This document shows positions 57,627 to 60,103 of a stretch of DNA of 64,000 bases, piece by piece. The stretch lies in sequence record MW248466.1. One strand, given 5' to 3'. Each line of letters opens with the position of its first letter. The stretch's first letter is position 1. The notes beneath the pieces are model-generated. The model was given only the letters and a program-made list of their open reading frames with translations. It was not told the DNA's origin and made no database searches. The translations under genes were made by a program, and so were the position numbers.

Positions 57627-60103
57627 ATGATTGCTAAACCAAAGTTAAAGAAAAAAGTGTATTATGATTATAAAACTAATAATATTAGTTTTTTAATAGT
57701 GGCTAGAGACCTTAAAAAGAACAACGTTAGAAATTATGGGATTCCATTAACTCTATACGATAAAAATCTTATAGGTGTAGATCCTTGGGATCCTGAAATT
57801 TCTGATGAAATGAAAACTCGTGTATTAAGAGAAGCTAAAATTAATATATGGTTTTATCTAAGGGAAGTTATAAGAGTTCCAGTTCCTGGTGGTAAAGTTA
57901 TGTATGAACTTCATAGAGGTAATATGGCTATGACGTTTTGTATGTTACACAATTTAGATACAGCGATAATGCTTCCACGTCAGCACTATAAAACATATTC
58001 AGCTGTATGTTATTATTCATGGATAATGTTATTAGTAGGTAGTAACTATACAATGCTATTTACTCATAAATCTTATTCAGATACTACTGAGAACTTAAAA
58101 CGTCTTAAAAATTTATTTAAAGAGAAATGTTTACCTGAATATGTATTAGCTAATTTTGGAGATAAAAATGATAGAGATAAGATTAATGAATTTCAATTAG
58201 CTAGTAATAACAATACTATTAAAACTGTTTCACCTCCGACTAACGGTGAGTCAGCTAACAAAGCAGGTTAATATCATGGCTTGCTATAAATCTTTTTAAT
58301 TGCTGGGACAAATTATTTAATTTAATCAGCATCACGTATGTGTTCAACGACTAAATAAAAGACAATTATAAAATTGAAGATATAGTCTAAAATAGCGTGG
58401 TTCTACTGTAAATAGTTGCAGTAGTAAAAGAATATTAATTGCTGGAAGAGATTATCATCTTAATCAGCATCACTAATTATAGTGTTCAACGACTAAATAT
58501 ATTCACTTATTTATATGAGTATGATATAGTCTGATCTATATTTAAACAAATATAGTTAACTTAATGACCTATGGTTTGGCTAGATGAGTGGGCTTTTATA
58601 CCTCACAACCAAACAATGTTTGAAGCAATGAGGCCTGAAATTAATGCGGGCTTATTTATTTAATTGCTGGAAAGTCTTTATTAAGATAATCAGCATCATT
58701 AAAATTAATGTTCAACGACTAAATAATAAATAGTATTAATATAATACTAAGATATAGTCTATTCTATATGGAATCCATGTAGTTAATATTAAAAGGCAGT
58801 CTCTACAGCATCAGCTATAGCTAAAAAGAATGGTACACCTTATGGCCTTCTTATCACCACAACACCGAGTACATTGGACGTACCTCAAGGACAGTTCTTC
58901 TTTGAACAAATGAATGATGCAGCTCAATGGACAGAAAAAATATATGATTATTACATTAATTCTGAAGAAGAAGGTAATGAAAAATTAGAAGAATACATGG
59001 AAAGTAATTCAGGTAATTCATTCATCTATATAGAATATTCATATAAAGAATTAGGTAAAGATGATGCTTGGTTAGAAAAACAAAAACGTCAAATTGGTTC
59101 TTTAGAAGCAGTTAAACGTGAAATTCTTCTTGAATGGGCATTTAGTAATGATGATTCATTATTTGATGAAGAACAAATGACGGAGTTATCATTATATGCA
59201 AATAAAGAGATATATAACACTATTGATTTTAAAATAAACAACAAAACGTATTACGTCCATATGGTTAAAAAGATGGAGAATATGCATGAAAAGAATTGGT
59301 TAGTTGGTATTGATATATCTGGTGGTCTTGGTCGAGATAATACTGCATTTACTGTAGTTGATCCGGGTACATTAGAACCAGTAATGGTTTTCCAAAATAA
59401 TATAATTAACGGACCTACTTTTAGAAAATTAATTAAAGAACTTATTACACTTTATATACCTAATGCAGTATTAATACCTGAACGTAACTATGCTGGTACA
59501 GTGATGATAGAAGATATGATTCAAACTGATGGTATTGGAGATAATATTTTTTATTCATTAAAGAATAGAACAGCAGAAAAACAAGTTGAAGTGAATAAGC
59601 AAGTATTTAATGAAATTCCTAGACATAGTACTAATAAAGTTACTAAACAAGTAAGAAGATATGGCATTGATACAACTAAAAAATCTCGTGATCTAATGCT
59701 TAATGAAATTTTATCAATGATCGTTGAAGAAAAGCCTTATCTAGTTAATAATAAACTATTATTCCAACAAATAAAATCTCTTCAAATGAAAAAAGGTAGA
59801 ATTGATCACCCTGATGGAGGACATGATGACTTACTCATGAGTTATTTATTCTGTTTATATGCATACTATTACGAAAAAGATATTAAAAAATTTGTTAAAG
59901 TTAAATACGGTTCAATGGTATCTGCAAGTGGAGAAAATGCAGAGGAAATTGAAAAAGAAAGACAAGCTAGAAGTAAAGATATTGCATCTATAAAACGTAT
60001 TGGAGGAATTATTGATGGTAATTCACCTACCAATCCTCTATTACAGAATAATAATTCATCCCCAGATCAAAAATCAAAAAGAATAATGAACTTATTAGAT
60101 TGA
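57627..60103 (+). CDS. terL: Terminase large subunit, spliced: join(57627-58268, 58396-58409, 58567-58636, 58796-60103), 677 aa
   Basis: Walker A-like PRQHYKT; splicing yields KAG|RGSTV|PMVWLDEWAF...RP|AVSTAS...LLITTTP; nuclease motifs VGIDISGG, ERN and DDLLMS; joined length 2034 nt is in frame. Confidence 0.92.
58269..58395 (+). ncRNA. Minimal group I intron 1 (127 nt)
   Basis: P1 with U58268.G58279, P10 ATCATG/CGTGGT in register, P/Q/R/S elements, P3 and P8 stems, terminal G; no P9. Confidence 0.88.
58410..58566 (+). ncRNA. Minimal group I intron 2 (157 nt)
   Basis: P1 CTACTGU/GCAGTAG, TTGCTGGAA, AATCAGCA, GTTCAACGACTA, TGATATAGTCT, P9 hairpin, terminal G. Confidence 0.88.
58637..58795 (+). 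ncRNA. Minimal group I intron 3 (159 nt)
   Basis: P1 AGGCCU/GGGCTT, P10 TGC/GCA, P/Q/R/S elements, P9 hairpin, terminal G. Confidence 0.88.

Follow-up and report, generated by a model that had tools for sequence, protein, structure and literature searches.

Introns in phage terminase genes, and the presence of three introns within one phage gene (Twort), are old findings. The usual small reference ribozyme among group I introns is that of the Azoarcus tRNA-Ile gene, a subgroup IC3 intron of ∼205 nt with a complete core. In Twort, orf142 is said to carry three subgroup IA2 group I introns devoid of open reading frames (ORFs), the IA2-type cores of the T4 sunY intron reportedly stay catalytically active when trimmed of their periphery, and the abstract of the AR9 genome paper is said to describe the intervening sequences of that phage as self-splicing introns. 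In Bacillus phage AR9, the gene for the terminase large subunit, terL (AR9_g121), is annotated as a five-exon join with four introns around the ATPase centre. The gut ‘Jug’ jumbo phages hold 2513 group I introns with a mean length of ∼206 nt, their terL lies in 2–3 pieces, and metatranscriptome reads confirm splicing for 37 of 76 predictions (Sci Adv 2026, PMC12880540). At the lower end of the size range are the degenerate ‘group I’ introns of fungal rDNA (Phialophora, Arthonia) of 56–81 nt, one of which reportedly splices in vitro (PMC3160393). The subject here is terL of Staphylococcus phage MarsHill, a 267-kb AR9-like jumbo phage with DNA presumed to contain uracil, from which a window of 64 000 nt was analysed that is identical to bases 1-64000 of record MW248466.1 and shares its coordinates. 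The MarsHill authors describe a plaque-forming phage whose terL is intron-disrupted, and they say that for this gene alone the mature product ‘could not be confidently reconstructed’. It is very probable that the gap in this gene consists of three ORF-less group I introns with exons of 14 and 70 nt between them, and that their removal yields a terminase of 677 aa.

Twort reportedly resembles MarsHill as a phage of staphylococci in which one gene holds three introns, with short exons between them and cores of IA2 type, whereas its ribozymes are of ∼250 nt or more, keep P2, P7.1/7.2 and P9, and reside in a different host gene and phage family. The Jug phages likewise contain many small ORF-less group I introns in essential genes, terL included, whereas their lineage and host differ, the paper contains no structural analysis or statement on minimal size, and the first MarsHill intron is ∼80 nt under their mean (PMC12880540). 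The same compact design also occurs, often in tandem, in IMG/VR contigs of 230–400 kb.

GenBank annotates MarsHill terL as two ‘terminase large subunit’ coding sequences (CDSs) at 57627-58271 and 58874-60103, separated by 602 nt. The sister phages S6, SA1 and DC4 possess an uninterrupted terL of 2034 nt (677 aa), and an earlier inspection of the window from its letters (hereafter the sequence-only reading) had named such intron-less homologs as a check on its claim of three introns of 127, 157 and 159 nt at 58269-58795. Alignment with the S6 and SA1 genes reveals three MarsHill insertions at exactly these positions, each lying between aligned bases, each preceded by T and each with G as its last base, which confirms the boundaries to the base and gives the following structure.

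57627..58268, plus strand: terL exon 1, residues 1-214, ending in ...KAG; aligns to S6 terL 1-641 at 92.7% identity
58269..58395, plus strand: intron 1 (I1), 127 nt, P2 and P9 absent; not in S6/SA1
58396..58409, plus strand: terL exon 2, 14-nt micro-exon CGTGGTTCTACTGT, coding for R G S T and two bases of V
58410..58566, plus strand: intron 2 (I2), 157 nt
58567..58636, plus strand: terL exon 3, 70 nt, completes V219; PMVWLDEWAFIPHNQTMFEAMRP; Walker B and catalytic Glu; aligns to S6 terL
58637..58795, plus strand: intron 3 (I3), 159 nt; not in Madawaska, S6 or SA1
58796..60103, plus strand: terL exon 4, residues 243-677, TTTP coupling motif and nuclease domain; aligns to S6 terL 726-2034 at 94% identity

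Joined, the four exons form a frame of 2034 nt and 677 codons whose sole stop is terminal and which reads ...KAGRGSTVPMVWLDE...; the joined TerL segment ...KAGRGSTVPMVWLDEWAFIPHNQTMFEAMRPAVST... agrees with S6, and the exon-junction peptides predicted for spliced TerL are ...KAGRGSTVPMVW... and ...AMRPAVST.... Exon 3 aligns to the Walker B region of T4 gp17 (...MIYIDECAFIP...) and the joined segment to ...RGNSFAMIYIDECAFIP...TTTP of the same protein, an alignment that places the three insertion sites around the Walker B/catalytic-Glu centre of the packaging ATPase. The joined ORF with its one terminal stop and the gp17 alignment bear out the earlier proposal of a 677-aa frame in which RG and Walker B are restored. 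Protein searches took each of the two ORF pieces and the uninterrupted S6 ORF as a separate query. Exon 1 matches PHROG 32359 (terminase large subunit, E 4e-54); Pfam returned weak terminase matches only for this divergent TerL, and PHROGs and the T4 gp17 alignment were used in its place.

Residues 215-268 of TerL, which include Walker B and TTTP, are absent from both annotated ORFs. The annotated stop at 58269-58271 is made of the opening three bases of intron 1, and the TTG start annotated for gp071 at 58874 is an annotation artefact by which 26 codons of exon 4 (start 58796) are omitted. The MarsHill GenBank annotation is wrong for gp070/gp071, and the four-exon structure gives the mature terminase exactly. 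None of I1, I2 and I3 contains a complete ORF of 30 aa or more, and the short ORFs of the gap cross exon–intron boundaries; a 30-aa ORF at 58571-58663 is exon 3 continuing into intron 3. Readings of the gap as an intein, a translational bypass or a split protein were rejected, as the insert lengths are not all multiples of three, stops lie inside the inserts and the missing residues include Walker B. The micro-exon restores RGSTV like S6 (AGAGGTAGTACCGT) by means of synonymous or near-synonymous codons (CGT GGT TCT ACT in MarsHill vs AGA GGT AGT ACC in S6), and the retention of the R-G-S-T residues with codons that differ from S6 indicates selection at the protein level. Intron guides pair with 13 of its 14 nt, in P10 of I1 and P1 of I2.

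The motif order TTGCTGG ... AATCAGCA ... GTTCAACGACTAAAT ... GATATAGTC is present three times between the annotated terL ORFs, so that all four group I core motifs recur in ordered copies as the sequence-only reading had it, and GTTCAACGACTAAA has exactly three occurrences in the 64 kb, all inside 370 nt. Helices were mapped by hand in I1–I3, and each pair was then checked by script, with the following result.

I1: P1 58263-58268/58279-58284; P3 58291-96/58357-62; P4 58301-06/58326-31; P5 58310-14/58319-23
I1, further helices: P6 58333-35/58340-42; P7 58349-53/58383-87; P8 58363-67/58372-76
I1, P10: guide 58273-58278 pairs 6/6 with exon 2 at 58396-58401
I2: P1 58403-09/58418-24 (7 bp); P3 58430-35/58499-504; P4 58440-45/58464-69; P5 58448-52/58457-61
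I2, further helices: P6 58471-75/58480-84; P7 58491-95/58527-31; P8 58505-10/58515-20; P9 58536-43/58548-55
I3: P1 58631-36/58648-53; P3 58655-60/58725-30; P4 58665-70/58690-95; P5 58674-78/58683-87
I3, further helices: P6 58697-701/58706-10; P7 58717-21/58755-59; P8 58732-38/58742-48; P9 58764-71/58775-82

In all three introns the core helices P3, P4, P5, P6, P7 and P8 follow one another in canonical order with a P3/P7 pseudoknot, and every listed pair is standard. Across I1–I3, P1 measures 6–7 bp, P3 6, P4 6, P5 5, P6 3–5, P7 5 (GACUA/UAGUC) and P8 5–7 bp. The cleavage-site U·G pair of P1 is U58268·G58279 in I1, U58409·G58418 in I2 and U58636·G58648 in I3, the terminal guanosine is G58395, G58566 and G58795, respectively, and P10 is in register with the guide at 6/6 (I1), 5/6 (I2) and 3 contiguous bp (I3); the P1 with its U·G and the in-register P10 claimed earlier are found in each. 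The junctions fit the Rfam consensus (J3/4 UAA, J4/5 and J5/4 A-rich, J6/7-P7 UUCAACGACUA, J8/7-P7′ GAUAUAGUC), and the conserved junctions together with the guanosine-binding P7 are near-identical to that consensus and invariant in all ten copies that MarsHill carries (see below). P2 is absent from I1, I2 and I3, whereas an 8-bp P9 hairpin is present in I2 and I3 and lacking in I1, so that the earlier label ‘core-only’ holds for I1 and fails for the other two. J7/3 consists of AAU only in 10/10 MarsHill copies, which leaves no P7.1/7.2, and the P7.1/P7.2 of subgroup IA2 are accordingly lacking. The earlier list of missing elements stands for P2 and P7.1/7.2, as judged by comparison with the 289-nt intron of AR9, whereas the absence of P5abc says little, since P5abc is not expected in an IA2-like lineage.

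Support from group I covariance models, another check named with the earlier claim, comes from the Rfam model RF00028, which is independent of the present analysis and has a curated gathering threshold of 50 bits. In E-value mode on a short stretch this model gives I1 a score of 47.0 bits (E 1e-10) and I3 one of 45.1 bits (E 3.9e-10); I2 is picked up in two partial pieces of 17.9 and 12.4 bits. All of these scores are sub-threshold. A 16-kb RF00028 E-value search did not report the mini-introns of the related phages LY01, AH12 and Madawaska, which were filtered out. With a covariance model that spans P3 to P3′ and was seeded with six MarsHill copies (R1), the four MarsHill copies outside the seed score 76–84 bits, with I2 at 84.2 bits, and the S6 and SA1 loci give no match.

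On the scale of the whole MarsHill genome, nhmmer, a regular-expression grammar and R1 recover the same ten copies, three in terL, one in the gene for DNA polymerase I, two in that for virion RNA polymerase (RNAP) beta-prime, one in gyrB and three in the gene for non-virion RNAP beta. Sized against S6, the seven copies outside terL measure 185, 158, 140, 155, ∼170, ∼169 and 174 nt, and the ten-member family spans 127–185 nt. P3 is represented among the ten by seven distinct strand sequences, every one of which is paired 6/6 with its own partner; when strands are swapped across copies the mean falls to 3.3/6 and none is fully paired. In P6, the four outermost pairs are complete (4/4) in 10/10 copies, P5 varies in sequence with its pairing of 4–5 bp kept in 10/10 (partly by inspection), and P8 varies yet pairs in all eight copies having one. 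I1, I2 and I3 are mutually ∼72% identical and differ by compensatory changes. The helix mapping and this ten-copy comparison confirm that P3, P5, P6 and P8 differ between copies with their pairing kept, as the sequence-only reading had stated.

A pattern scan of IMG/VR gave at least 120 loci, in which R1 has 108 matches (55 of them distinct sequences), many in contigs of 230–400 kb and often in tandem with ∼220 nt spacing; the core spans of these relatives are 94–120 nt. In an alignment of the 55 distinct sequences, 93.5% of cells are paired vs 63% after shuffling and 33–48% with partners slid, and both sides have changed in 338 cells, although the alignment was fitted to the model and its pairing figures therefore lean towards it, a bias of which the MarsHill counts are free. 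An automatic splice-site finder that combines P1, P10 and an open frame recovered just ∼6/10 of the known MarsHill junctions and was therefore not used for sizing the IMG/VR introns. Up to five compact cores lie 213–242 nt apart on one strand at the IMG/VR loci L011, L017, L032, L039, L049, L067 and others; such clusters imply runs of mini-introns with very short exons between them. For the five-intron cluster of contig L049, combinatorial exon reconstruction yielded no open frame. P8 is wholly absent from the MarsHill copies at 113168-113307 and 226132-226286 (L005 and L008), in which just CUAA lies between P3′ and J8/7, and the P8-less layout is also seen in uncultivated huge-phage contigs, e.g. 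IMG/VR L049:2426-2506(-). Loss of a core helix is unusual among group I introns.

The relationship to introns of ordinary size is seen most directly in AR9, whose terL introns give RF00028 matches of 247–281 nt at 71–93 bits, above threshold, and hold an insertion of ∼80 nt with P7.1/7.2, a longer P6, a P9 with further 3′ structure and, in some, P2. At one site, after the same Gly codon (which precedes RG), lie AR9 intron 1 with 289 nt, an AH12 intron with 206 nt and I1 of MarsHill/LY01 with 127 nt. These three align from the 5′ splice site through the internal guide sequence (IGS) and the core to the 3′ exon and differ by deletions of whole elements; relative to the 289-nt AR9 intron, I1 is without the ∼80-nt P7.1/7.2 insertion, the P6 extension and P9. 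AR9 and MarsHill thus share the phage clade, the gene, the intron 1 site, the IGS context and the J6/7-P7 and J8/7 sequences, whereas the AR9 introns are of ordinary size with P7.1/7.2, longer P6 and P9, elements absent from MarsHill, which scores below threshold. On the strength of the shared site and end-to-end alignment, the best reading of I1 is that it descends, by reduction, from an ordinary IA2-like phage intron. As the AR9 homologues have an insertion of ∼80 nt where MarsHill has AAU, the MarsHill introns are IA2-derived by homology and not of canonical IA2 architecture.

The number of terL introns varies among relatives from none in S6, SA1 and DC4 to two in Madawaska, two in AH12, three in MarsHill and at least four in LY01, a presence/absence polymorphism typical of mobile introns. 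The independently sequenced LY01 has the same three introns (92% identity), and Madawaska, whose terL does not contain I3, has two of them. The site-1 intron of Madawaska (L003:1170-2422) is 1253 nt long and holds within its P1 loop an ORF of 340 aa for a zinc-finger endonuclease-like protein, with a Pfam DUF4379 treble-clef zinc finger and an annotation as homing endonuclease; in MarsHill, I1–I3 encode no such enzyme. The Madawaska micro-exon is AGAGGTAGTACTGT, and the guide sequence is changed to match: exon GCCGGU faces guide GCCGGC and micro-exon AGAGG faces the P10 guide CCUUU, the MarsHill counterparts being GCAGGU/GCUUGC and CGUGGU/AUCAUG. A synonymous exon change accompanied by a matching guide change is what a working P1/P10 predicts. 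The core of the Madawaska site-1 intron (P3 UUUAUU/AAUAAA, P8 AGUAUUA...) resembles MarsHill I3 and not MarsHill I1, a likeness that suggests exchange of cores between sites. In LY01, a fourth mini-intron of ∼161 nt (L131:2099-2259) follows the TTTP motif, in the region of AR9 intron 4 and of the second AH12 intron, and a further interruption of terL follows S6 position 1617, with a gene for a ‘mobile element protein’ downstream of it. At the level of whole genomes, S6, DC4 and SA1 show no trace of the intron family (exon matches only) and MarsHill, LY01, Machias, AH12 and PB50 show 9–26 blastn places, a sharp split inside one phage clade. The DC4 authors state that Rfam found no introns in DC4.

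In the mechanism that we propose, terL would be transcribed as one pre-mRNA in which each intron would fold to the standard group I core, with a P4–P6 stack, a P3–P8 stack and a P7 guanosine pocket closed by the P3/P7 pseudoknot. The internal guide would pair on one side with the last 6–7 exon bases to give P1, in which U·G marks the cleavage site, and on the other with the start of the following exon to give P10, and two transesterifications, with exogenous guanosine acting first and the terminal G last, would join the exons. The product would be an mRNA for the 677-aa terminase, its ATPase centre rebuilt from four pieces (RG motif, Walker B WLDE and TTTP). We infer the occurrence of splicing and of RNA catalysis from the boundaries, structure, covariation and homology, and splicing in particular because the Walker B segment, which a viable phage requires, is encoded by the joined exons only. 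As the introns contain no endonuclease gene, their spread and persistence probably proceed through endonucleases encoded elsewhere in these genomes or through recombination on co-infection. Collaborative homing provides an established basis for such persistence.

Several observations weigh against this reading of the gap as self-excising introns. Splicing is predicted here from DNA comparison, with the putative excision judged against the intron-less S6/SA1 alleles. RF00028 at the gathering threshold reports nothing in the whole window, I1–I3 all scoring under 50 bits, which keeps a default gathering search silent; the shortfall stems from model positions that are deleted (P2, the P6 extension and the long P8 loop) and not from mismatches in the core. 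The peripheral clamps of the core (P2, P7.1/7.2 and P9 tetraloop contacts) are missing, the introns have a G+C content of 24–25% with stems that are mostly A-U, and the proposed fold minus P7 is worth just -15 to -29 kcal/mol at 37°C. By calculation, the fold of minimum free energy is another one, lower in energy, that shares just 21/31, 31/43 and 32/43 of the proposed pairs. Given a weak, A-U-rich fold and a different minimum-energy fold, active folding may need a chaperone, translation-coupled protection or low temperature.

The explanation that draws most on these points accepts genuine group I introns and denies them autonomy, splicing taking place only with a trans-acting helper such as a phage or host RNA chaperone, a maturase-like protein or the translating ribosome; its prospects appear to fall slightly short of even. 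The short, very A-U-rich helices, a native fold that is not the predicted minimum-energy fold, the absence of P2, of P7.1/7.2 and, in I1, of P9, and the existence of two sibling copies without P8 all point this way, as does the growth of the entire phage clade at 30°C. Many natural group I introns require proteins, e.g. CYT-18, Mrs1 and StpA. Against a helper, every junction of the catalytic core is intact and no candidate helper is identified. Small size by itself does not exclude autonomy, given that engineered T4 sunY mini-derivatives of ∼180 nt reportedly show activity and that the Azoarcus intron, at 205 nt, is very stable. Growth at 30°C would favour weak folds. The idea that weak introns cause the failure of MarsHill to plaque at 37°C was rejected, as the intron-free DC4 is also grown at 30°C and the temperature habit is therefore not explained by introns.

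If the MarsHill introns are instead autonomous, the family may be the smallest natural group I ribozymes with a complete core, a suggestion that we put forward tentatively. The MarsHill introns are 46–78 nt shorter than that of Azoarcus, a very stable, G+C-rich RNA in which P2, P9 and two tetraloop-receptor clamps are present; their own G+C content is 24–25%, and they show no obvious clamps. The sunY mini-ribozymes are man-made, of ∼180 nt and assayed at high Mg, whereas the MarsHill forms are natural, smaller and located in an essential gene. The earlier claim of minimal size holds in comparison with complete-core introns only, as the degenerate fungal forms of 56–81 nt are smaller; these keep P1, P7 and P10 only, without P3–P6 and P8, whereas the MarsHill introns keep every core helix (PMC3160393).

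A far weaker alternative takes the inserts to be decayed, unremoved intron remnants with the terminase made as separate polypeptides, in line with the two separate terL CDSs of GenBank. It is very improbable in view of the omission of residues 215-268, with the Walker B/catalytic Glu region and TTTP, from the annotated ORFs, the conservation of the 14-nt and 70-nt exons as protein through different codons, the viability of the phage, and the compensatory change in stems and guides, which a decaying sequence does not keep. Chance resemblance or an assembly artefact, e.g. a repeat collapsed or duplicated in assembling uracil-containing DNA, for which the MarsHill authors do note sequencing interference, is extremely improbable given the three introns of the independently sequenced LY01 (two in Madawaska), the E-value of 1e-10 from an independent Rfam model and copies just ∼72% identical to one another with compensatory differences.

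Already known are the disruption of MarsHill terL, the multi-intron terL of AR9 and the splitting of terL by small group I introns in jumbo phages of the gut; the novelty lies in the exact layout of four exons, in the 14-nt micro-exon and in the extreme degree to which the introns are reduced. A limited and partly noisy literature search turned up neither the exact division of terL into four exons, one of them of 14 nt, nor a structural description of the reduced design, nor natural P8-less copies, nor an explicit statement on the ‘smallest group I intron’. Likewise, no record of complete-core group I introns as short as 127 nt (Azoarcus having ∼205 nt) emerged from this limited search, outside of which lie the length tables of the 2025 intron database and the Jug study. 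With group I introns as the reading of the gap, the mature MarsHill terminase is reconstructed and a published gap resolved, and the 289 nt of AR9, 206 nt of AH12 and 127 nt of MarsHill/LY01 form a natural reduction series at one site that shows which group I parts are discardable. Should the 127-nt RNA or the P8-less siblings self-splice, the lower size limit of complete group I ribozymes would drop to a new value ∼40% below Azoarcus, and P2, P7.1/7.2, P9 and even P8 would be dispensable in nature. Such a result would bear on ribozyme folding and minimal-catalyst questions and would offer a very compact scaffold for ribozyme, splicing and RNA-circularisation engineering. As Rfam at its gathering threshold misses these introns, the intron load of jumbo phages is likely underestimated, and essential genes are likely mis-annotated as split. 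The appeal is moderate to high for RNA biochemists and lower for phage genomics, where intron-rich jumbo phages are now familiar.

Outside the window, the MarsHill copy at 113168-113307 (L005:49168-49307) is a mini group I intron of 140 nt that lacks annotation and lies close to the 3′ end of CPT_MarsHill_113, the gene for virion RNAP beta-prime. The stop annotated for this gene, at 113191, falls within the intron, and its true last exon, 113308-113340, codes for VQALYSLTKE*, the same as the end of the S6 CDS. In the gene for non-virion RNAP beta, two neighbouring mini-introns at 252198-252557 (L008) enclose a micro-exon of 21 nt, a second case of a very short internal exon.

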